A DNA stretch of 60,490 nucleotides, filler included, from Dugesia japonica (Eukaryota), in NCBI GenBank assembly GCA_001938525.1. It is 6 parts of 6 records of this genome, joined end to end, with 100 filler letters (N's around TTAATTAATTAA, not from the genome) between each part and the next. Parts side by side here need not be neighbours in the genome. Positions count along the whole stretch, not along the records: positions 45,907 to 60,490 come from MQRL01642136.1; 5 more parts are not named here. One strand, given 5' to 3'. Below, piece after piece: positions 18,522-60,490 of this stretch. Position 1 is the first letter of the stretch. The number at the start of each line of letters is the position of its first letter. A program made the translations under genes and the position numbers. The notes under the pieces are model-generated. The model ran no database searches and was not told where the DNA came from. It was given only the letters and a program-made list of their open reading frames with translations.

Positions 18522-19353
<832 letters not shown>

Positions 19354-20639
19354 TATCGAATGCTATATTTCTCGATATCAAAACTAATTAGTGATGAATA
19401 ATTACAGATTATCATAATGAATATTTGACTGTGTTAATATTGTGAATATAATTTTATTTTAATTTAATTTATTTAAATAAATTTCTTAACTAGCCACTTT
19501 TGAAATGAATATTGATTAATATAAATATTTTTTATGAATTGTACAAGGAATTTTAAATACAGAGAACCGTCAAAATGACCTACTCTCTATGCGAATCACT
19601 TTTTCAACTGCCCTTGAAATATTGTCTATTAATAGTGATATCTCTATGTGGACAGAAAGTACAAAAATCCCAGTAAAGAAATGAAGTTATCTCAAAAAAC
19701 AATATATTTGAACAAGGCAATAATTCAATCGAAATATAAGAAGTAATAAAGAACCAATATGAATATGCAAAATTTTGTTGCAATATGTTCCTCTTAAGAA
19801 AATTAACAAAAACGAATATTTAAAATATAAGAAAATTATTAATTTAATTTAATCAAAAAATGTTAAAAATCATTTATAAAATAGCCAGCATATTAAATAA
19901 TGAAGTCTCAATTTTTCTAAACTTTATTTGGTATATCTATTTAGTTCCAACAGCCAAATGTAAGGTAGGCGAAATTACGGAAGAATTAAGGATGACATTC
20001 TGATATTTACGAACAGTAAAGTTCAACATTATGAAGTAATTAACATTGACGAAAATAATGCTGTGTTGAGATGACCTACCCCGTGGTCCAGTATCCCGTC
20101 TTTGTATAAAGTCTAATGAATGTGGTTTGTTGATCAGATTTATTTTACTGCTCTCCATATTTTGATAGCAACAGCTATACATTTATTATTTTCAAACACA
20201 AGTCATGGCGAATCATAAATCGTTTCTTCCGTAATTACACAGTCTGACTCGGTGATCTTTCTCCCGCCGTAATCCTTCCATAATTCCTTGACATTAGCCA
20301 GTACTGAGGCTTCTATCTCTGTGTACGACTATACGATCTCGGTGAGCATTCGATTATTACAGATTAGAGAGTATTCTAGTTGGCGAATAACACTCAATCT
20401 CTCTCTGAGCACAAATGTTTTCTTATTTGCTATTTGGTTCTCATCCTGGATCTTTTTATTTTCCTTTCACAATCTCTTCAGTTTCATACGTGTGTTCTGT
20501 TATTCTACGAGTAGGTCTTCCCGCGTCGGTTTCGAGATTCTGGCGGACATTCTGTGGATTAGATAATCATTAGTTCATAATTCTTATGATATATTTCACA
20601 GTTATGAAAAGAAATCAATTTATCCAGTTTTAACATTAC

Positions 20640-45804: not shown

Positions 45805-46634
45805 ACNNNNNNNNNNNNNNNNNNNNNNNNNNNNNNNNNNNNNNNNNNNNTTAATTAATTAANNNNNNNNNNNNNNNNNNNNNNNNNNNNNNNNNNNNNN
45901 NNNNNNTAAATGAAGATCTCCAGAAAGAAAGAGATGAAAATAATATAAATTTAAGAAAATTAAAAGAAAACCTAAAACCAGAAAAAGTTTAATCATTTTT
46001 AGTTAAAGGAAATTATAAAGGTAGTAAGAAAATAAAAATGACCCAAAGACGTTTCGATATTTTAACTCAAGATTTAAACAGTGATGATTTTTTAACAGAA
46101 AAATATACACGTGTATCAGCCAAAAAGGAAATTACTGGAGCAGATAGAGTATACGTTTAAAAAAATAATAATAAATGGATACAGTTTTCTATAAAATGTT
46201 AAAAGAATATAATTTTAAAAATAACTCTTTACAAAACTTTTGTAAAATTAATAGTGTTAATGAGAAAACAGTAAAAGAAATATTTAAAGAAATGGAATAT
46301 TGAATATAACACTAGATCATGGGACCCTTCTAGATATTTACAAAGAAATTCAAATGGAAGTTTTATTTCTGTAATTGATAGATTTGAAAAGAAAGTTACT
46401 GTTGTTAAAATTGATAGATTTGAAAAGAAAGCACTAACAATTAAAATTGATGTATTAAAAAATAAACTAGGAATTAATTATATTGATTTTGTTCGTGATA
46501 TGGAAAAATAGTCAAATATAATCATGCAGTAAAGTAATGTAATGTAATGTAACATAACGTAATGTAAGGTTTATAGTAAGGTTTATAGTAACGCAAAATA
46601 AAAAAACACACACCACTAAAAAAATTCTTTAAGA

Positions 46635-48084
46635 ATGATAGATTTAGATAATGATTTTGAATTTGCATATACGTTAATAAAAAATGACATACTTAAAATT
46701 TCACCTTCATCAGGTTCGATAAATAATTTAAATGCAAGTGGTGACGTTGTATTTCAATCTCTCTAATCTACAAACCCACTTGATATTTGCAATTCACTTT
46801 TATACTTTAAAATTAAAATTACAATTCCAGATGCATCAAAAGATAAAATAACATTAGAGAATAACATCTTTCCAAGTTTATTTAAATCAATGAGATTAAC
46901 ATTACGTTCAACAGATGTAGAAACAATAAATGATCTAGGTGTTATATCTACGATGTTAAATTTAATAACTACAAGTGAAACATGGAAAAAAGAATATGGA
47001 CAATTATCAGGATGGTTACCAGATATAAATAAAGGAGACACCGATGTAAAAACTTAGGATTGTAATATTGGTTATTATAACAGAAAAGAACTTTATAAAA
47101 ATAATAAATTTGAAGGTTACTTTCAATTAAGAAATCTATTTGGTTTCATGCAAAATTTTAATAGAGTTTTATGCAATACAATGATAGAGTTTACATGTAA
47201 CAGACAAATGAATGATAAATTATTATTTTATGGAGATGCCGCAGCTACAGCAACATTAAAACTTTTAACACTTGAATNACACATTCCAGAATATAGATTA
47301 TTACCAAAAACAGAATTAATTTTACTGGAAAGAATAGCAACAAATAAACGAATTCAAGTTTCATATTTAAATAGAATAACTGCTAAATCAAATTTAGATG
47401 CAGGTGGTTATTATTCAATCAAAATTAGTAGTCTAGCATATCAACCTAGATATATTTTTATTTGATTAAAAGATACAGAAATTTCATTTGAAAAAAATAA
47501 TAATCTATTCATTCAGAAAAGCACAACAATCACAAAAGGTGTTGCACCAGCAGCAGATGTACCCAAAATCATTATTTAAAAAGTATGCAGATACAATTAA
47601 ACAATTCTTATTACCCAATAAACGAATGTAAATTTAATATTNNNNNNNNNNNNNNNNNNNNNNNNNNNNNNNNNNNNNNNNNNNNNNNNNNAGCAACAAA
47701 TAAACGAATTCAAGTTTCATATTTAAATAGAATAACTGCTAAATCAAATTTAGATGCAGGTGGTTGTTATTCAATCAAAATTAGTAGTCTCTTAAATCAT
47801 GTGAAAAATTAGTAAAATGTTGTCATGATTTTTTAATAGAACCACAATTATCACTTTTAGATTTTGGAAATTTATATCCAATATTTTGTTTTCATGTAAG
47901 TGCTCATGATGATAAAATGAATATTAATAATGTTGATGTTACACTTCATTTAACAAAAGATCCAGATTTTAAAGGTGCAATTTACTGGTGTATACTTGAA
48001 GAGAAACATGTATAAATGAAATTGGCCAATAGTAAAATTGTTATGATAGAAAATTTAAGAGGAGTTGAATTTCGTGTTAAATAA
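46635..48084 (+). pseudogene. Maverick major capsid protein (double jelly-roll)
   Basis: NLNASGDVVF, ITLENNIFPSLF, ETINDLG..TM..L, GW.PD, N.GYYNR, QLRNLFGF and PRYIFI. Has frameshifts and stops. Confidence 0.8.
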
Positions 48085-48650
48085 ATGTCATCGAAGTTTA
48101 TATGTGAAGAATGTGGAAAAATAATCTTAAAGAAAAATAAGTCAAGACATTTAGATTTATGCATTAATAAAGTAAAATTTACTTCAGAGTCAAGACATTT
48201 AGATTTATGCATTAATATAGTAAATTTTAAAGGTAGCAACCTCGAGCTAATTAGAGCACAAACCGGAGGTGACTTACAAAATTCAAAAGTAATATCTACA
48301 TTATTAAAACCTTTCACTTGGGAAAAGTATCCTGGAGAAAGACATTTATTTCAACATAATTACACCGTTCCAGGAACTAGATTAGATATTAGAGAGGACA
48401 CCGAAGGTGTTACAAAACCTAGAGAAGAACCAATTAATAATGTTGATGCAGCGGCTTTAAAACATGACATTGCATACGCTTCAGAAGATCTCCGAGATCG
48501 ACATATTGCAGATGTTAATTTAATACATGATTTGAATAATATTAAAAATCCAACATTAACAGAAGAATTTCAAAGAGCTCTTGTAAAATTAGCAATGAAA
48601 GGTAAAATAATGATTGGTCAAGGTCAACATAAGAGAAAAATTATAAAAGA
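48085..48650 (+). CDS. Zn-finger-like N-terminus plus parvovirus-type phospholipase A2 domain
   Basis: CEECGK..RH, HNYTVPGT (YxGPG loop variant), PINNVDAAALKHDIAY and RHIAD. Confidence 0.85.
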
Positions 48651-49482
48651 NNNNNNNNNNNNNNNNNNNNNNNNNNNNNNNNNNNNNNNNNNNNNNNNNN
48701 NNNNNNNNNNNNNNNNNNNNNAACATTTTAGAAAAGTCATCATTCATGAGAAAGATGATATTTGGTCTGCAGATTTAATATTTCATGGTATTAAACGAAA
48801 AGGTAAAAATGTAATATTAAAAGTTATAGATCTTTATACAAAATATGCTTTTGTTGAACTTTAAAAAAATAAAACCGAACTAGAAACAAGAGATGCATTT
48901 AAAAGAATTCTAGATAAAAGTTTAAGAACTCCAAATAAATTATGGACTGATGAAGGTAAAGAATTTTAAAGTAAAGAATTTAAACCTTTCTGTAAAAAAA
49001 ATAAAATTGAAATGTATACAACTGAAAATCATGGTAAAGCAGTTGTAATTGAAAGATTTAACCAAACATTTAAAAACAAGCTCTTTCAACATTTTACTGT
49101 CGTTGGAAATCAAGATATAAGCCAAGCGCTTTTAAATAAAATTGTACATGAATACAATAACACAATACATTCTAGTATTAATGTTACATCTCAAGAAGCA
49201 ACAAAAAATCCAGAAAGTATTAACCTTAAATCTGTTAAACCTTACACTGAGACTCAAAAGTTTAAAATAGGAGATCGAGTACGAATTACTAAAATTGGAA
49301 AAACTTTTCCTAAAGGTTATACTTTTAAATGGTCAAAAAGAATTTATATTATTACTAAAATACATCGCGAAACTGGCCTACGGACAAATCATGAGCCATT
49401 TACTTATGAAATCTCAAATCATAACGGCAACAAATTTTTGGGGAGATTTTATAGTAATGAATTACAAAAAACTTTATTATAA
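48620..49482 (+). pseudogene. Maverick retroviral-like integrase
   Basis: DDIWSADL, VIDLYTKYA, LWTDEGKEF, IERFNQT, YNNTIHSSI, FKIGDRVRI, KGYT..W and FYSNELQK. Two in-frame stops. Confidence 0.93.
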
Positions 49483-49707
49483 ATTTAATATGTTAAGATC
49501 AAAAATGGAAAATATTAATATTTTTGATCTTCTTTTAGAATTAGAAAGGTCAGAAAGGAAAAATGATGAATCTCATATTGAAATTATTTTATGGAATATG
49601 GAAGATGAATTAATTAACATAGAAGAAGAAATAGAAAAAATTTATGATGAACTATTTGCGTTGAAATTAAAATATGACATGTTATGATTAAAAAATAAAA
49701 CCTTAAA

Positions 49708-51159
49708 ATGGATACTCTTATTGGAAATTTAACTAAGACTATTTCATCTTTAAATTATATTAATACAAAAGGTGATGAAGAAGTTTTTAAAACTTTAAAT
49801 AAAAATATGTTACATTTAAAAAAAGTGTTACAATATATAGTTGATAATAAATGTAAATCAAAAATTAGTATTGATCATTTTAAAATAGAAAATCTTAATC
49901 CTAAAATAGAAGAAAAAGGTGGAATGATACGTAAAATGTATATGGAGAAACTACTGCTTTTAGAAAAACAGAAAAAATGTGCGAAACCTACGCGAGAAGA
50001 GATACTTGAAAAGAAATATATAGAATATGAAAAGAAAAGAAAAATTACAATAGATGCGTTAATGGAAAATGTTAAACCAAAACCAGAAATTATTAAACCA
50101 GAGCCAGAAAGTGAAAGGGAAAGTGAAGAAGAAATTATTAAACCAGAACCAGAAATTATTAAACCAGAACCAGAAATTATCAAACCAGAGCCAGAAAGTG
50201 AAAGTGAAAGTGAAGAAGAAATTATTAAACCAGAACCAGAACTAGAAAGTGAAAGTGAAAGTGAAGAAGAAATTATTAAACCAGAGCCAGAAAGTGAAGA
50301 AGAAATTATTAAACCAGAACCAGAAATTATTAAACCAGAACCAGAAATTATTAAACCAAAACCAGAAATTATTAAACCAGAGCCAGAAAGTGAAAGTGAA
50401 AGTGAAGAAAAAATTATTAAACCAGAACTAGAAAGTGAAAGGGAAAGTGAAGAAGAAATTATTAAACCAGAACCAGAAATTATTAAACCAAAACCAGAAA
50501 TTATTAAACCAAAACCAGAAATTATTAAACCAGAGCCAGAAAGTGAAAGTGAAAGTGAAGAAGAAATTATTAAACCAGAACCAGAAATTATTAAATCAGA
50601 GCCAGAAAGTGAAAGTGAAAGTGAAGAAGAAATTATTAAACCAGAACCAGAACTAGAAAGTGAAAGGGAAAGTGAAGAAGAAATTATTAAACCAGAACCA
50701 GAAATTATTAAACCAGAACCAGAAATTATCAAACCAGAGCCAGAAAGTGAAAGTGAAAGTGAAGAAGAAATTATTAAACCAGAACCAGAACTAGAAAGTG
50801 AAAGTGAAAGTGAAGAAGAAATTATTAAATCAGAACCAAAACCAGAAAGTGAAAGTGAAATTGAAGAACAAAAGATGATAAGAAAAAAGAAAGAAAGACG
50901 CGAATTCTTATTAGGTGAAATAGAAAAGGCTAAACAAGAAAAATTAAAGATTGAATCTAAAATTCAAAATGAAAGTTCTGAATCTGAATCTGAATCTGAA
51001 AATAATGATATTGATAGAAGTGAAATCTTTTTTGATAAAATTGATCATTTAAGATATAAACCATTACCTTTATCACAATTAGAGAAAAATGTAATCAAGA
51101 GAGGTAAAAATAATAGAAAAGAATTAAGAAAGAAGAAGAATGATAAATTAACTTTTTAG
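49708..51159 (+). CDS. 483-aa acidic repeat protein of unknown function
   Basis: Intact ORF. 50075-50860 is a mosaic of EIIKPEP (21 bp) and ESESESEEE units. Confidence 0.75.
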   Translation: MDTLIGNLTKTISSLNYINTKGDEEVFKTLNKNMLHLKKVLQYIVDNKCKSKISIDHFKIENLNPKIEEKGGMIRKMYMEKLLLLEKQKKCAKPTREEILEKKYIEYEKKRKITIDALMENVKPKPEIIKPEPESERESEEEIIKPEPEIIKPEPEIIKPEPESESESEEEIIKPEPELESESESEEEIIKPEPESEEEIIKPEPEIIKPEPEIIKPKPEIIKPEPESESESEEKIIKPELESERESEEEIIKPEPEIIKPKPEIIKPKPEIIKPEPESESESEEEIIKPEPEIIKSEPESESESEEEIIKPEPELESERESEEEIIKPEPEIIKPEPEIIKPEPESESESEEEIIKPEPELESESESEEEIIKSEPKPESESEIEEQKMIRKKKERREFLLGEIEKAKQEKLKIESKIQNESSESESESENNDIDRSEIFFDKIDHLRYKPLPLSQLEKNVIKRGKNNRKELRKKKNDKLTF

Positions 51160-51634
51160 AAGAATTTTTAAAATCTATGCATTCAACATCTCTTTCCACA
51201 ACTATAAAAAAAGAAGATGGTTTAGAGAAATCTAATAAAACTTTATGTGTTACTGACATACTAGATGAAGTTTATATATCATTAGATAAAAAAACCATTA
51301 CAGGAATGATGTTGTAGATAAATGTAAACAAATTAGTTTAGTAGCTTACATGAAATTAGGAAAATTATTTATATTATTAAAAATGCATTTTAAAAAGAAT
51401 TCTGAATTTAAAAATTATTCAGCTGGAAAAGAAATTTATTTTTCAGATAGACATATTCAAAAGTTAATTCATTTTAGTAGATTAGCAGATAAATATCCAA
51501 AGATAATAAATAGTAAATTATCATTTTATAAAATTACACTTCATTTTAAAGAAATTGAAGAAATCATTAATTTTAATAATCAACAGATTTTTTAATGCGC
51601 TTTTTAGACCAACGGGATGCATAAATCTCAACAT

Positions 51635-52510
51635 TTAAAATAAATCATTTAACATTTCATCAGTTTCTTTGTTCAAATAAAAATAATTATATTTTGTTTT
51701 CCAGTGAAGATTTACTTCATAATCATATTCTAACTTGNNNNNNNNNNNNNNNNNNNNNNNNNNNNNNNNNNNNNNNNNNNNNNNNNNNNNNNNNNNNNNN
51801 NNNNNNNNNNNNNNNNNNNNNNNNNNNNNNNNNNNNNNNNNNNNNNNNNNNNNNNNNNNNNNNNNNNNNNNNNNNNNNNNNNNNNNNNNNNNNNNNNNNN
51901 NNNNNNNNNNNNTCTTGTGAAATAACTTTTTTGAATTTCTTGATTCTTTTCATTAACAACATCATCAAATATTATTAAGTTTTTCTATTTCTTAGAAAGT
52001 TTATCAAAAGAAATTATTTCATTAGGTTTATTACTAAAAGTTATAATAATAGATCTTGGTTTTTTAACTACTAATTTTTTCTCAAGATAATATTGAACAA
52101 CTTGATATGGAGTAATACAATTCTTTGGAACTATATTTTGCTTTTCAAACATTAAAATAATTTCTTCTTTAGTTAATCCATATTCAAAACCAAGATAAAG
52201 TAATTGAATTTCAAATTGAGTGATTGTTGTGGAATAAATAATTAAAACATTGTGATCTAAAAATCCTGGAGTTAATAACATTTTCATTAATAAAACATTT
52301 TTACCACAACCTGAAGATCCAATCATTANNNNNNNNNNNNNNNNNNNNNNNNNNNNNNNNNNNNNNNNNNNNNNNNNNTAATAACATTTTCATTAATAAA
52401 ACATTTTTACCACAACCTGAAGATCCAATCATTAAAAGTCTAAAATTATTAGCTAACACTTTATTATTAAAATGTGTAATATTATTATTCCAGATCAACG
52501 GAGACGTCAT
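51635..52510 (-). pseudogene. Maverick packaging ATPase (A32/FtsK-like)
   Basis: FRLLMIGSSGCGKN (Walker A), LIIFDDVV (Walker B), YFTR and C-terminal KYNYFYLN. Interrupted by N gaps. Confidence 0.9.
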
Positions 52511-52713
52511 TTTTTAAATATTTAATTTTAGTTATTACAATTTTCTCAAAACATTTTTTATATTTAATTTCAATTTCATCATCATCAGATTGTAAATGAT
52601 AAGTTTTACAATCAACATCTTTAACTTCTACTACTAATTCTTCTTCTTCCATTTGTCCGTAGGCCAAGCTTTGCTATTTCTATTATAACAATTTTAATCT
52701 CTCAAGAAACATA

Positions 52714-53309
52714 TTACATCCCAAGTTTAGATTTCATTTCATTAATAACTTTAGTTTGATTTTCTTCTAACATTTTTAAATTTTCATCATTCTTCTTAGT
52801 CTTTTCTTTTTTTGTTGCCGTTATCAACTCTTGAACTTCATTTACCATATTTTTACTAATACTAATTTCATCATCAGTTAAAATTTCATCATTAACAGCT
52901 TTCTGTTGAAATAAGAATAATTTATTTTTAACACATTCAAGTTTCTTAATTAACTTTTCATATCTTTCTTTTTTAGAACTTATTAAAGAAGAATTTAATG
53001 TTCCAATTACATGTAACACGGAAATTGCGCCAGTAATTATTTGGTATACCGATTTTTGTAAGCACAATTCCAACTGGAGTAATTAATATAATTCCACCAA
53101 TTCTAATTCTAACACTAACAAATATTTGTGTATAATTTATAGCCGAATCTATTCTTTCCCATCTTTTATGTATTTTTTTTATAATGTTTAATTTTATCTT
53201 TAATATAATAAAGGTCATTTTAAAAATCTCTAATTCTAGACATTGCAAGTTTATTTTTTAAATCTATAATTGTGTAATCGGACAAATCAGGATATAACTT
53301 TTCTTCCAT
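52714..53309 (-). pseudogene. Maverick membrane-associated helical protein
   Basis: MEEKLYPDL, a central hydrophobic hairpin (GGIILITPVGIVL..IITGAISVL) and KAVNDEILTDDE. Frameshifted. Confidence 0.5.
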
Positions 53310-53312
53310 TTC

Positions 53313-54016
53313 TTAAGTAATAAATTTTACATCTAAACTTTTTAAATAAATTTCTTCTGGTAAAATTATTACAATATTGTTTATAATTTTATCTTTATTA
53401 ATTTCAGTGCTTTCTCTATAAATTTTAATATTATTATCTTTAGGTTTAATATAAATAAATGATACTGTAGTTTCATTAATTCTAATGGCATATGTAAATT
53501 TCTGAATTTGTATTTCACAACTACCTTCTATATTTATACTAACTCTACTATTAATGTTTCCCCATAAAAATATTTCTTTTATAATTTTACCTTTTCTTCT
53601 AAAATCTAAACCGTTAACATATTTATCATTAACAGAAAAATTATAAGGATTAATTGAAAATAATATTTCTTTACTAGGTGGATTAACATGTGGTAAGTAA
53701 TTATCAATTAATTCTTTTATTTTTTCAATTGAATAAGTTTTAAATAATAAATTAATTTTATCAAAAAAAATTTTATGTAGTTTTGGTTTCATTAATTCAA
53801 ACGCTTTAACTAAATCATCATAAATTTTAAATCTATGCAATTTAATGATTACACTCTTTAAATTAATATTTTCTGGAAAAATTATTTCAATATAATTTAT
53901 ATTTGTGTCTCTATTAATTTCAGTGCTTTCTCTATAAACTTTAATAGTATTATCTTTAGGTTTGACATATGTTAAGTAATGTTTTTAAGAAGTCTAATAA
54001 GTTATAATCTGACATC
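53313..54016 (-). CDS. Unknown Maverick protein with an internally duplicated ~45-aa domain
   Basis: KPKDNTIKVYRESTEIN..IEIIFPENINLKS versus KPKDNNIKIYRESTEIN..IVIILPEEIYLKS. Probable frameshift near the 5' end. Confidence 0.5.
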
Positions 54017-54052
54017 TCTTTCTTAAATGTAAAATATCGGTCACGCCGTGGC

Positions 54053-54801
54053 CTATAATCGATATTTTCTTAAATGAACTAAAATAGCAATTGTCTCTTG
54101 GTTAAAATCTATTCTGTTAAAATTTTCATCCATAATGTTAAATCTTATACTGTCAATATATTTTTTATTAATTTTAGAATAAATTTTTGCAGATGGTCTT
54201 TCAAGAATTTTAAATTCAAAAGGAACTGAGTTAATTGGAAATGAATACAATAAATTTATTTGTTTAGTATTTCCATTCGCTGATTTTACATAACTACCTT
54301 TAACAATATTACAAGTTATATTTATCATGTTATTATGAGTAATGTCAAATTTATTTTCTGAATAATATTTTTCTGATGGATAAGTTTTTACATCAAAACC
54401 TAACATTTTATGAAAGAAAAATTTATCATCAAAAATTAAAATGTTTTCTGTTTTCATATTACATTTTACTGTTGAAGTGTCAGGTGTAACTTCTATTCCA
54501 TATTTTGCTAATTTATTTGATATTTCTTTTACTTCATATGCACCAGGTTCTAGTTTATTTTTTCCATGTTCGATTTTCTTTGGTTGCATTTTTTTTCCTT
54601 GAGCATCAACTTTAATTTCAACTTTTTTATTGAGATCTGGAGTGGTTTCAAATTTATTATTTAAATCTGTAATGTTAAAAATAATATTGTAACATGTAAA
54701 AAAATAATTCCAAGTTCATTTTCTGAATCTAATTCGATAGGAAATTTAAAATCTAATTTTAAATCTTGTTCTTTTCCAACTACTAAGAATTGATGTGACA
54801 T
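54053..54801 (-). pseudogene. Maverick minor capsid (penton)
   Basis: FPIELD, YNIIFNIT..NNKF, PGAYEVKEI, MLGF, INITCNIVKGSY, LYSF, ERPS..IY..IN...I and DEN...IDFNQE. Has frameshifts. Confidence 0.88.
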
Positions 54802-54990
54802 GTCCGTAGGCGCGTAGCTATTTCTTATAAATAAAATATTGACATCAGCTCACGCGTGAGCCGTTTATTATGTTTTCATGTTTTGTGTAAAATGTTTCAT
54901 GTTTTTATGTTTTTATGTTTCGTGTAAAATGTTTGAGAACATTTTTAAAAGCCCACTTCGTAAGCCGTTTATTTTTTTAAATATTTAGCT

Positions 54991-55866
54991 TTATATTTTT
55001 TTATAAATCTTGTCAGATATTAAACCCATCATCTTTAATTTTTTACATGTCTTTTGTATTTCTTCATCTACATTATCATTTCCAGATTTTGCTGCTGAAA
55101 TTAATAATGTTAACTTTACAAATAAAGCCAGAGGTGAAAAACCTTGTCCACTTTCATATTCTGATTTAGAATATTCTACAGGTGGANGTGTTATAACTGG
55201 TAATGATGTTGGTATAATTTTCTTTTTTCTTTTAGGTTTTACATTAACATCTACCTTTTTAAATTTTCTTTTTAAAATACTAACATAATCACAATTAGTT
55301 GGAATAGGAGCAATAAATTTATTTAAATAAATCTCAACATCTTCAGGTGTTTCTGTTCTATCTAGATTTCTTAAAATTATTCTAAATATTCCATCAGTGA
55401 ATGGTATAACTTCAGATTTCAATAAGAAATTTTTATTATTATCTGGTCCGGAGGCCGGCTCTGCTATTTCCTCAAATAAATAAATTTTGTTTTCTTTTAA
55501 AGTTATTTCCCTAAAACTTTTTTTTATCTTATCAACACCAACAATATCTAATCTAGAAAATTTAGGAATAATTGTTTGAGTAAATTTTCCGCAATTATTA
55601 ATATTATCAATTGAAAATTCAGGAATAAATGGAATTACTTTTTCATTTAAAAAGAATTTTGTTATATCTCTCGTTTCTAATGATGTTTCTGGTTTTATTG
55701 AAATTTTTTCTAATGCTGAAATTAATGGTTGTTGCATGAAAGATAATTCACTTTGTAAGTTTCTTGTTTGAATATTATTTTTACAGAAAAAATCATTATA
55801 TTCTTTTTGAGCTTTAATTTGTTTTTTTATTTCTATAATTCTTTTTTCAACTTCTTTTGTATTCAT
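54991..55866 (-). CDS. Maverick putative core protein (291 aa)
   Basis: Intact ORF with QPLISAL, FTDGIF..I, SGQG and a C-terminal KLTLLISAAKSGNDNV..EI....L...GLI helix motif typical of Maverick accessory proteins. Confidence 0.6.
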   Translation of the reverse strand: MNTKEVEKRIIEIKKQIKAQKEYNDFFCKNNIQTRNLQSELSFMQQPLISALEKISIKPETSLETRDITKFFLNEKVIPFIPEFSIDNINNCGKFTQTIIPKFSRLDIVGVDKIKKSFREITLKENKIYLFEEIAEPASGPDNNKNFLLKSEVIPFTDGIFRIILRNLDRTETPEDVEIYLNKFIAPIPTNCDYVSILKRKFKKVDVNVKPKRKKKIIPTSLPVITXPPVEYSKSEYESGQGFSPLALFVKLTLLISAAKSGNDNVDEEIQKTCKKLKMMGLISDKIYKKI

Positions 55867-55896
55867 GCTTCGCGTGTAGGCTATTTTCTATAAAAC

Positions 55897-56531
55897 TATT
55901 TTAGCTTTCATCTTCATCTGTTTCATCTTTATCTTCTTCAATTTTTATATATATTGTTTTGTCTACCACCTTTATTACCTTTGTGGGCTTTGCTCCACGG
56001 ATTTAAATATAAACCTTTTCTTTTATGAACTATACGTATTCCTTTTTTAAACTTTTTTGTTACATCTTTAAATTTAGGATCAATATTTTTTAAATATTTA
56101 TAAATTGCAGAACCTTGCCATGGACTTAAATATAAACCTTATCCAGTTTTGGTTTGTCCATCGGCCAGCTTCGCGGTTTCAGTTTCTGTAATAGTTTGTT
56201 CGGTTTTAGGTTTATCTAAAAGTTCAATCTCTTTTTGATTTTTAATGGCTTCTCTAGAATTTGCAACTGTTTTTGCAATTCCAGATGCAATACCTGTTGC
56301 ACCAGCTAATGCACCAATTATTGCAGGTATTGCAGCTAAAAATGCAAAACCGCTATCTTTAGATTTCTTGGCTTTGAGTTCATCTTTTACTTTTTTACTA
56401 ATATAATAATTTTTACCGTTTATCTTTACAGATTTACATTTCTTAAAATTTACTATCTTTTCTAATTCTTCTTCTGAAGGATTACCTGCATTCGTTACAC
56501 TCGTTGGGCTCGTTACACTCGCTTTGGTCAT
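55897..56531 (-). pseudogene. Adenovirus pX(mu)-like core protein
   Basis: SGFAFLAAIPAIIGALAGATGIASGIAKTV. After a frameshift come GLYLSPW and KGLYLNPW repeats. Confidence 0.65.
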
Positions 56532-56539
56532 TTCTTATA

Positions 56540-59500
56540 TTAACAATTTAATGTTTTATTTATAATGTCTAATCTAAAATGCCACATTATGCATTCTTCA
56601 CAATAACATTGATTTCCATGTGGCCATGTTTTTGTTGCATTATCTTTTATAATTCTTTTGTCGTCATATCCAATTAATGCAATCTTTTGTTGTTCTACAA
56701 TTTCAATTTCATGTAAGTTTGATTTTATTGTATAGTTTTTTCCATAAATTATTTTACTAGGATCTTTTAAAACTTCATCAAAATTTTTCATTAACAATTT
56801 ATTATTTTTCTTTACATCTTTTTTTCTCGAATCAAATGCTACGCGATCTTTTGTTTGATAACTATAAGCATAAGAATTTGCTTTTATAAAATCTCCTTGA
56901 ATTATTTCAGAATCAGGCATTTCGTCTTTCATCTGAAATAATTCATTTCTCAATAAACTTTCTAATTTTATTAAATTATCTCTACCTTTTATTTCTGTAA
57001 AGATACCATCCGTGTCTGAATAATGAATTTTATAATTATCTTCTCCAATTAAAGGTTGCATTTGTTCATATATAAAATCATACATTACTTGTTTTGCATG
57101 TTCAATTATTGTAAATTCAATATATTGAAATTTATTATATCTTAATTTTCCTTTTACCATATGCATTGCCGCAACATTGGCTTCATTTGAATCATTCATT
57201 GTGAAGATTTTACTTGATTTAAAATTTATTTTAGATGTAAACTTTTGATAATCTCTGTCTTTATCTACAATTTCTATGTTACACCTATTTCTGATATTTT
57301 CTAGTGTTTTTCCATAAAATACATTCAACATTAATTTATAAATGTAATCACCAAAAACATCTTTATTTTTTTAGATTTAATTTATAAACATGTTCTTTAA
57401 ACCATGGAGATGTTTTCATTAAAATTTTCTTGTGAATCATTTTTAGTTTCATTCCAAGTTTTAAATATAAATCTAATATACTTCCTAAAACTACATAATT
57501 TTTCTTGTTAAATTGATTAAGTGTAAGTTTAACATTTTTATGTGATATTTTCCTTTTAAAACTTTTTTGGTAATTACTTAACATGTCTTCTGTAATATTT
57601 ATTCTTTCTGGACATAATGGGAAATATTTTGTCTTATCATGAATTTCCGGTGGATAATCAAGATCAACTTCATAAACAAAATTAATGTTATCATTTGCCA
57701 TTTCATATGTTAAGTCTTCACATTCAAACATTTCACCTGTTGGTAATGGTCTAGTCATGCAACTTGCATATAAAGAGTTTTCATCAATATATTTTNNNNN
57801 NTATAAATGTATCTTCAAATAAATCATTAAGATAATCATCTGGAATGAACTCATGTGTGTTCATCATTTCTTTTAATTCTTCAAATTGTGCTTTATTCAT
57901 TTGTCTGGTATATGGATTTTTATTGTTATCATGACTAAATACTTAACTTTCACCTAAAACTCCAGAATATCCACCTCTAATTCCTTCTTCAATCATTAAG
58001 AAAATATCATAAGTTTCTTGTTTCGCATATTTCAATTTTACATTTGCATTTAACATTCCTGTTTCCCATGAATATCCTGGAGCCGAATATGAATAACATG
58101 GATCTAATTGAAGAAGATTGTTTAGACATGAATCTCTAAAGTTTTCTAAGAAAGCTGCTAGAATCAAAACATCTAACTTCATATAATGTAACACCACATA
58201 TTTTCATATTCTTCAAAGTCAATTAGAAATGCCGCATAATCTTCATCAGATATTTCTTTTTATGTTAATGTATTAAAGAAATCTTCTTTTGTTGGTGTTT
58301 AGTTTAATTTTAATAATTCTTCAACTTCTGTAATATTTTTTCCTTATACATATTTGTATGGAAATATAGCTTTCTTTGATCTTAAATTAAAAGAATTTAA
58401 TATTGGATAATTACCCGATTGTGTTAATAATTTTCCTATTGTTTCAATTGATGTAAATGGAAGTAATCGTGCCGAATCAAGAAATTTAATATTTTCATAT
58501 TGAAATGAAATATAATTATCTGATGAATGTGGAATTATTTTTTTAATTGTTGATGGAAAGTTTGTTAATAGTTCTCTAAAAAATAAATGGTTATCATAAC
58601 CTGATGCGTTATGAAAGTAAAATGGTATAAATAAATTTTTAACCCTTTTATCATTCATGTTACAATTATTACACGAATATCCACAAAATTCTCCATTAAA
58701 ATGGTTATGATCTTTAACTGGAGTGCCGCATATTTGTCCGTCACAATATCTACATTTTGTCTCAGATGTAAATTCTGGAACTTCGCTTGTGATTTCTTCT
58801 ATAAATTTATTTTCTTTAATATCTTTTAATTTATTATTAATGTCTTCTAAAAATTTAAAGAAGTCATCATAAATGTTTTCACCTGAGAATTCATAATATT
58901 TACTTTCTAATAATTCTTGATAATCTGATTTTAAATAAATACCTAATGATAAAGCTTTTTGTTTTTTAGTTAGAATGTTTGTGTATGCTTCGAAATCTCC
59001 AAGAAGTATAAATGGTATTTTATTTTTCTGATAATATTTATTAAAAGAATAATAATCTTCATATCGAAAAATAATATTATTTGGTTGATGGTTAATACAA
59101 AATTCTTGATGTTTCTTTAAAACGTCTTCATTTGAATAAAAATTCATACATCTGATACACGGATAACTTTTATTTCCATTTGTTGCAAAGAATACAGTTA
59201 GATCTCTACATAAAATGTAATGATCTTTATACACTAACAAATTACATTTATTTTCTTCTGAATTTGGTTTTGTTGTATAATGTGAAATGTGTAATGGTTC
59301 AAGTTTTTTATTAGAATTTACACCAAACACATTTATTTTAAAGTTATTTAATTTTTCAAATTTTTCTATATCGTCGATGTTCATTGGAAATTTAGAACAA
59401 TAATATCTTAATTCTATTTAATGTAAAATGTAATTTTCTACACGTATTGGATTTTCAACTGGATATTTATGAGCTAAGATTGAATACAAGAAACATTTAT

Positions 59501-60329
59501 TATCTTTATTTTCTATATTGATAACACCTTGTTTTTTAAATGGTAATTTGCAAAATGTTGCTCCAGCTAATGATTGATATTTACTTAAATCTATTTTATA
59601 ATCAATTATATGTGACATTGTCCATCCTGAGCCTTCTTTATCTTTGTCTTCAATCTTTCTTTGTAATTCATTAAATATTTCATTAACACCATTTTTAATT
59701 TTACTTTCAATTGTAAATCTTTTATTTAAAGAATCTGGTGGAAAATCTCTTTCAAGATATTCATTATTTGTTTCTTTTGTATATTTACAATTAACTGACA
59801 TACTTATAAGAATCTTTTTTACATATCTAAAATATTTAGTAACAATTTCTTCTACTTCATCTTGAAATAAATTAATATCTCTAACTGGTTCATATATTTC
59901 ATCTACATTTAATTTCATCACTGCTTTGCTTTCTTTGAAATATTCAATTTCATAATCTTTAAATTCTCTTAATAGATCTTTAATTTCTGGTTCATAATCA
60001 ATTGCTTCTTCACCAGGAAGTTGATCAAATAAAACTTTGTTTACAATTTCTTTATGTTTGTCAGAATTGAAATGTGCTCTTTCATTATTTTGTCTTTGAA
60101 ATTTTTTATCACAGAATTCACAGAATAATGGAAAAATATTTGGGTTTTCACATTTTGTTGAATTTAAATTTTCATGTAAACCATTTTCTGAATTAAATCT
60201 TTTATGACATTTTAAACATTAAAATTTTTTATTTTCTCTATAACAAGTTCTAGAATTAATATGTCCTTTTAACCCAGCTAGGTTTTTAAATGTTTTATTA
60301 CAATTAGAACATTTATTTATATTGCTCAT
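56540..60329 (-). pseudogene. Protein-primed family B DNA polymerase with N-terminal C2H2 fingers and an EndoVII-like insert
   Basis: GSGW, CFLYSILA, GDFEA (ExoI), KDHNHFNGEFCG..CNNCN, FHNASGYDNH (ExoII), DENSLY (A), MLNVFYGKT (B), YSDTDG (C), DDKR. Several frameshifts. Confidence 0.96.
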
Positions 60330-60490
60330 GTCTGTAGGTTGCTTTGCTATTTTCTAAAGAATTAATTTAATCATAGACACACTAAAAGGGGGACATATTT
60401 CCTCTTAAATTAATATTTTTTATATTTAAGAGGAAATGGTCAATACCTCTTTAAAAAGTCACTTCGTGTATCTGACATTTTACATATGAA

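Follow-up and report, generated by a model that had tools for sequence, protein, structure and literature searches.

What are the short GC-rich sequences that recur at gene starts and inside genes of an AT-rich Maverick/Polinton element of Dugesia japonica, and how did they come to be there? The element lies at positions 45907-60490 (record MQRL01642136.1) of the window, the 60,490-nt stretch of DNA analysed here (assembly GCA_001938525.1). This piece, which has a G+C content of 24.6% and seven runs of N, is part of a Maverick, as an earlier sequence-only reading of the window had proposed and as its polB, rve integrase, and double jelly-roll capsid genes bear out; both ends of the piece are inside the element, short of the terminal inverted repeats and 5-6 bp target duplication expected of a Maverick. 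Its genes are convergent and compactly arranged, on the plus strand up to ~51600 and on the minus strand beyond, and they mostly end in TAA. In this piece we identify ten related GC-rich modules of 12-23 nt that form one real nucleotide-level family. Four of the modules stand directly 5' of start codons, six lie in frame within open reading frames (ORFs), and all ten are on the coding strand.

The six module strings quoted in the sequence-only reading are all found where, and on the strand on which, it had placed them; the observation was real, but the number was too low, and four further members (B, E, K, and L) were found. Among the leader copies, module C (52655-52675, minus strand) precedes the ATG at 52652 of a packaging-ATPase-like gene, shares 16 identical bases with module A, and has AAAT on both flanks. 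Module D (54802-54819, minus), recovered in pattern and profile searches, precedes the ATG at 54801 of a penton-like gene; module F (55867-55882, minus), with its blocks in permuted order, precedes that of a 291-aa ORF at 55866; and module H (60330-60348, minus), which shares AAATAGCAAAGC with C, precedes that of polB at 60329. As for the in-frame copies, module A (49366-49386, plus) lies in the C-terminal SH3-like domain of the integrase and matches the core 11-mer GGCCTACGGAC exactly, module G (56156-56176, minus) lies in a PX-like gene and matches A at 20 of 23 bases, and module E (55445-55465, minus) lies in the 291-aa ORF and carries the full GAAATAGC prefix of the start modules. The remaining three are looser members: B (49981-49996, plus), a GC island with GCGAAAC and CCTACG blocks in a repeat-rich ORF; K (55983-55994, minus; 12 nt), in the second GLYLxPW motif of the PX-like gene; and L (59919-59930, minus; 12 nt), which carries AGCAAAGC in the N-terminal region of polB, directly before an in-frame ATG.

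The core 11-mer, with up to two mismatches, has five matches in the piece, all on the coding strand, compared with expectations of 0.15 from shuffles and 0.06 from first-order Markov simulations. This is a 30- to 80-fold excess. The prefix GAAATAGC occurs three times versus 0.31 expected, AGCAAAGC occurs four times and always on the coding strand, and there are 21 GC islands (14-nt stretches with at least 9 G+C), compared with 7.0 ± 2.8 in Markov simulations. When each of the six core copies was left out of the profile in turn, the left-out copy was always the top non-training match and always on the coding strand. The corresponding E-values are 5.8e-5 for C, 3.7e-4 for A, 4e-3 for D, 0.02 for G, and 0.05 for E, so five of the six core copies are detected; H, with E = 2.8, is weak alone. 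No Rfam family matches the modules.

The modules can be aligned on a common plan: a GAAAT or AAAAT flank, AGC (CGC in A and G), a GCRAARC-like block, a spacer of 0-4 nt, CCTAC, GGAC, and then AAA or ATG. Most begin with AGC, the blocks of F and B stand in another order, and K and L are short forms; the termini are not inverted. Direct repeats flank several copies (AAAT..AAAT at C, AAAC..AAAC at G, and AT..AT at D, F, and H) and none flank E, K, or L, in an AT-rich context where chance matches of this kind are common. The CG of the core reads TG in G and CA in H, as expected if the CpG of a single source sequence had decayed. The in-frame modules are read in at least three codon phases, with A and G differing in phase despite their 20/23 identity and E, B, and K differing again. 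Because the same bases are read in different phases, the similarity is at the nucleotide level, and a shared peptide motif was rejected on these grounds. Native polB sequence coding for an HNH-like Cys motif contains, at 58732-58741 (minus), the same 10-mer ACGGACAAAT that makes up the 3' part of A and C, whether by chance or as a possible donor or microhomology site.

In the integrase, relatives show what module A adds. Of the 19 relatives aligned to the C-terminal piece, 17 lack exactly the seven residues at module A, as do 84 of 87 loci in a wider comparison, the remainder lacking 6, 5, or 3. These seven residues (21 nt) fall in a beta-hairpin loop, modelled at lower confidence between strands E126-132 and E144-149 of the SH3-like barrel. 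Judged by these alignments, module A is evidently a true insertion; the sequence-only reading had rightly suspected one, although it put the size at ~6 aa. In this loop the closest integrase relative has four additional residues, but the DNA that codes for them is AT-rich and does not resemble the module. Module K, too, is on alignment evidently a true insertion: it accounts for four extra residues (SKAH) in the NPW/KGN motif of the PX-like gene (NPW-SKAH-KGN), which are missing both from the first copy of the motif in the same gene and from the counterpart (NPWKGN) in L007. The latter is a syntenic 13-kb metagenomic relative of the element (L007/L008) with a gene set identical in content. Module L may add three or four polB residues, the relative P0001 being three residues shorter there in a weak alignment at 26% identity. 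Two other explanations of the in-ORF copies were rejected: tiny introns, on the lack of GT...AG ends, and translational bypass, on the lack of a stop in any in-ORF copy.

Every in-ORF module keeps its ORF open, although the element has many breaks elsewhere. This copy of the Maverick is decayed: polB has four or more in-frame stops and three or more frame changes, the capsid gene at least four stops and a gap, the integrase two stops, the PX-like gene one stop, and the ATPase-like gene one stop and two assembly gaps, and there is at least one frame change in both the penton-like gene and the gene that starts at 53309. Because the in-ORF copies all keep their ORFs open, we place the insertions before the decay, made or filtered while the genes were functional. 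The in-frame TAA and TAG codons prompted us to consider a ciliate genetic code, which was rejected; gene ends are compact, with TAA, and each of the three stops is found in frame, as in a decayed copy.

At the gene starts, the modules are positioned with respect to a second conserved sequence. A T(W)AGAAA motif is close to nine of the 12 starts; the form T[AT]AGAA lies within 36 nt of seven of the 12 (0.07 expected per start) and TAGAAA is found at two more. Its distance to the ATG is 5-13 nt in genes with plain starts and 26-28 nt in the module genes, where the four modules sit between the motif and the ATG and end at the ATG or 2 nt before it. Besides the four genes with a leader module, five genes of the element have plain starts; those at 53309 and 56531 read TAAGAAATG. 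T(W)AGAAA could act as a promoter or an initiator, like motifs of polinton-like viruses, or as a splice acceptor (AG/AAA). Virophages and polinton-like viruses have short conserved promoter motifs beside their start codons (10.1101/2022.07.28.501842), and the likeness extends to T(W)AGAAA here and to ATAAAAATG in L007; it concerns the start motif, not the GC modules. T(W)AGAAA is not among the motifs described for giant viruses, and a helper virus is not known. Its presence at nine of the 12 starts offers a handle on the transcription of such elements.

The uniform sense orientation of the modules fits an RNA-level or a replication-linked constraint. Stop avoidance does not explain it, because two of the three frames are open in either orientation. 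Judging from the gene layout, and assuming that the element ends just outside the piece, replication that starts at the nearer end of the element would displace the sense strand of each module.

What process could leave this pattern? The reading we favour, at roughly even probability, treats the modules as very short GC-rich DNA insertions of a family specific to this Maverick lineage, in which they would have been copied again and again at a time when purifying selection still acted on the genes, and kept where they were harmless. Copies would have survived only between T(W)AGAAA and the ATG, as in four genes, or in frame in surface loops and low-complexity stretches, as in the integrase, the PX-like gene (twice), the 291-aa ORF, the repeat ORF, and the polB N-terminus. 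The copying would have been templated from an existing module, beginning and ending at short microhomologies (GAAAT, AAAY) in the course of replication or break repair. We prefer templated copying to transposition of a fixed unit because the lengths vary, the sub-blocks (AGC, GCRAARC, CCTAC, GGAC) recombine and permute, and several copies are flanked by direct repeats of 2-4 nt. The start copies lengthen an otherwise near-absent 5' leader and may affect expression, although such an effect is not required to explain them. Of the two explanations offered by the sequence-only reading, a tiny insertion element and a modular control system, the former is the better one, the integrase copy being an insertion.

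Several points weigh against repeated insertion. No second copy of the element turned up in the collections searched, so that no filled and empty alleles were seen, and among the in-ORF modules the alignments with relatives cover A, K and, at 26% identity, L. The flanking repeats are short, AT-rich, and defined post hoc, and no donor sequence was identified outside the modules. Random insertion does not predict ten sense copies out of ten, and four copies ending exactly at the ATG are more ordered than mere tolerance predicts. A stronger version of the insertion reading, which we put forward tentatively and hold to be rather doubtful, is that the modules represent an undescribed class of ultra-short (12-23 nt), non-palindromic, strictly sense GC-rich insertion sequence that the element's replication or integration machinery would copy. 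In this version, some copies would have been co-opted as the 5' leaders of four genes and others would persist as extra loop residues.

The alternative that survives best, unlikely though we consider it, is a cis-acting transcript signal. The modules might be leader elements, be bound by a protein or a small RNA, or be complementary to a structural RNA; function would hold their sequence, and the in-ORF copies would serve as internal signals or arise as by-products. All ten copies are sense, four stand at the ATG or 2 nt before it and follow a conserved start motif, the modules have less structure than shuffles, which would suit an accessible binding site, and polinton-like viruses and virophages do use short promoter motifs 5' of their starts. 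This alternative accommodates less well the six copies that lie within ORFs, far from starts, which leaves a fixed position in only four of the ten, and the permuted blocks of F and B. Five genes are plain, none of 90 related loci carries a module, and Rfam offers no match. The sense orientation itself is confounded with the direction of replication, the genes converging from both ends of the piece.

The direct repeats invite a different explanation, that each module is a tiny non-autonomous transposon, mobilised intact by an enzyme acting in trans, for example the element's integrase, with a short target-site duplication. Integrases of the rve type generate short target duplications, and the 4-nt repeats at C and G, the AT...AT at D, F, and H, and the AGC at the start of most copies speak in favour of such a unit. 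However, the termini lack inversion, lengths of 12-23 nt with permuted blocks sit poorly with a fixed unit, and the apparent duplications range from 0 to 4 nt. To our knowledge, 20 nt is also far below the size of any integrase or transposase substrate, and we regard this explanation as quite improbable.

The sequence-only reading had described the modules as micro-hairpins, on which account GC-rich mini-hairpins on displaced single-stranded DNA or on RNA would act through their structure. The heptamer d(GCGAAGC) is a known DNA mini-hairpin, it occurs in modules F and G, eight of the 12 GCNNNGC heptamers in the piece are within modules, and the sense strand of the modules is the one presumed, from the gene layout, to be displaced. 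The label nevertheless fails on folding. As RNA, seven of nine modules fold worse than shuffles (z = +0.45 to +1.6), and as DNA none folds better (z = -0.3 to +1.0), although nearest-neighbour parameters may underrate special triloops. The exact heptamer is absent from the other eight modules and confers no fold advantage where present, and two modules carry GCGAAAC, which is unable to close. The folds show that the modules are without hairpin potential, and the real GC hairpins of the piece are intergenic and unrelated to them in form; action through structure is very improbable indeed. Chance is barely credible, as are GC patches driven by Gly/Ala/Pro/Arg codons and an artefact of the assembly or of adapters: some other GC islands of the piece plainly code for Ala and Gly, and the assembly is poor, with seven N runs and duplicated gap flanks, but the excess over shuffles is 30- to 80-fold, the same bases recur in untranslated leaders and in more than one codon phase, the copies are not identical to each other, all in-ORF copies preserve the frame, and none is near a gap.

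The nearest module is more than 270 nt from the gaps at 52329-52378 and 51738-51912, and continuity and frame across the latter were not assumed; no gap was filled. The flanks of gap 52329-52378 (52273-52328 and 52379-52434) are an exact 56-nt duplicate, and those of gap 47642-47691 (47336-47443 and 47692-47799) are a 95% duplicate. These duplicated flanks look like overlapping contig ends or paralogous copies. Collapsed paralogous copies, if that is what they are, would imply more copies of the element in the genome.

Both GC hairpins of the piece lie in the intergenic region 54802-54990, which is unusually long for this element. The first (54846-54863, minus) folds at -9.1 kcal/mol (z = -2.1), the second (54950-54966, minus; -6.1 kcal/mol, z = -1.9) is followed by a U run, and the two have a common lead-in, ATAAACGGCTYACG. 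Between them is a 33-nt tandem duplication (54865-54934, 91% identity). Candidate readings of the region are a pair of terminators, a small insertion, and an RNA that has escaped annotation. A near-perfect AT-rich hairpin (60397-60437, minus; -14.8 kcal/mol, z = -4.5) lies ~50 nt 5' of the polB start motif.

Among known systems, the closest precedent for the modules would be the GC clusters of yeast mitochondria, by analogy of form and placement. These clusters include in-frame insertions (var1), bear short terminal repeats that are interpreted as target duplications, and undergo merging and shuffling, and bypassed GC clusters are described from Magnusiomyces (PMC8811140). The modules resemble them as short GC islands of an AT-rich genome that lie in frame in coding regions as well as outside them, with blocks shuffled among family members. 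Mitochondrial GC clusters, however, are palindromic hairpins and several times longer, whereas the modules are 12-23 nt, non-palindromic, Maverick-borne, and all in sense orientation. A second likeness is to the Rickettsia palindromic elements, bacterial sequences of about 100-150 bp that are palindromic and encode a recognisable peptide. Like the modules, these have landed repeatedly in frame in genes and are tolerated as extra surface peptide; the modules differ in being short and non-palindromic and in encoding no recognisable peptide. Templated insertions, which arise by microhomology-mediated end joining or template switching, are about 5-25 nt long, copy existing sequence, and are usually single events drawing on nearby sequence. 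The modules share with them a variable length and microhomology at the junctions, but not the presence of ten related copies over 11 kb, all in sense.

If the family is confirmed in more copies of the element, insertion of the GC-cluster and palindromic-element kind, seen until now in mitochondria and in reduced bacterial genomes, would extend to a virus-like element of the nucleus, with a unit that is far smaller than those precedents and hairpin-free. Confirmation would also make the modules a natural marker for dating and ordering events in a Maverick lineage, and would indicate that capsid-less steps (template switching in replication, integration) can remodel gene starts and protein loops.

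How far the family reaches can be judged from the relatives of the element. A search of 90 related loci (440 kb altogether) with the module profile gave no match, and all 12 gene starts of L007 are plain and A-rich. The nearest relatives of polB (39% identity) and of the integrase (up to ~50%) are metagenomic and carry no module. An exact-sequence look-up of 11 ORFs of the piece gave no match in the protein collection, and a word-based protein search with the polB C-terminal piece gave no relatives. Viral contigs searched with a polB piece and three module patterns yielded single matches only, phage-like and not AT-rich, which we read as chance. Restriction of the modules to one lineage is part of the insertion reading, and the two together have about an even chance of being correct. 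A related element (L009/L010, positions 18985-20331), in contigs of ~1 Mb, adjoins a Pao/BEL-type retrotransposon, which suggests that the wider element family lives in animal-like genomes.

On the plus strand, the first gene of the piece encodes the double jelly-roll major capsid protein (46635-48015; PF21738, 33.7 bits versus a cut-off of 27); it is broken and contains an assembly gap, and its start is plain, with the motif 5 nt 5' of the ATG. Just 5' of this gene, at 46530-46590 (plus), are short tandem repeats: a GTAAT-type pentamer followed by two copies of a 12-nt unit. A PLA2-like domain and then the rve-type integrase follow (48085-49482), broken and with an assembly gap between the parts. 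The PLA2-like domain (48085-48648, plus; PF08398, E = 3.2e-8) is of parvovirus type and directly 5' of the integrase, perhaps fused to it, the gap covering the junction; the same pair is found in L007. The integrase has 29 relatives at 31-50% identity, most with PF00665, and their alignment includes invariant columns in the catalytic core and in the SH3-like part. The repeat-rich ORF (49708-51159, plus), identified by ORF and repeat scans, is open and consists largely of tandem 21-nt units, in at least 23 copies, that encode KPEPEII-type and acidic Ser/Glu repeats. The length of this unit equals that of the 21-nt modules, probably by coincidence.

On the minus strand, the packaging-ATPase-like gene (51636-52652), broken and with two assembly gaps, has a Walker A motif and is 35% identical to an L007 gene with a faint Pox_A32 match. 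The penton-like gene (54053-54801), the "minor capsid" of the sequence-only reading, is broken and has homologues in L007 and 15 other related loci. Pfam scans of the element's proteins returned no family above cut-off for the penton-like and ATPase-like genes and recognised no maturation protease. An internal 131-nt duplication (53323-53453 and 53839-53969, 83% identity) lies in the gene between the penton-like gene and the gene that starts at 53309. The 291-aa ORF (54991-55866), from the ORF scan, is open with one N, and Pfam and word-based protein searches gave it no family match and no relatives. The PX-like gene (55938-56531), which is broken, is 30% identical to an L007 gene with a weak Adeno_PX match.

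The protein-primed polB (56540-60329, minus) is recognised by its Exo and Pol motifs and by Pfam zinc-finger matches. It has 3094 relatives, the best at 39% identity and the nearest ones annotated with DNA_pol_B_2 (PF03175), and it aligns with the 1249-aa polB of L007. A weak Endonuclease VII/HNH-like insert is present at 58344-59384 (minus). At its N-terminus, polB carries C2H2 (jaz-type) zinc fingers (59418-60329, minus; PF12171, 26 bits), and the N-terminal extension is also present in L007 and P0001.

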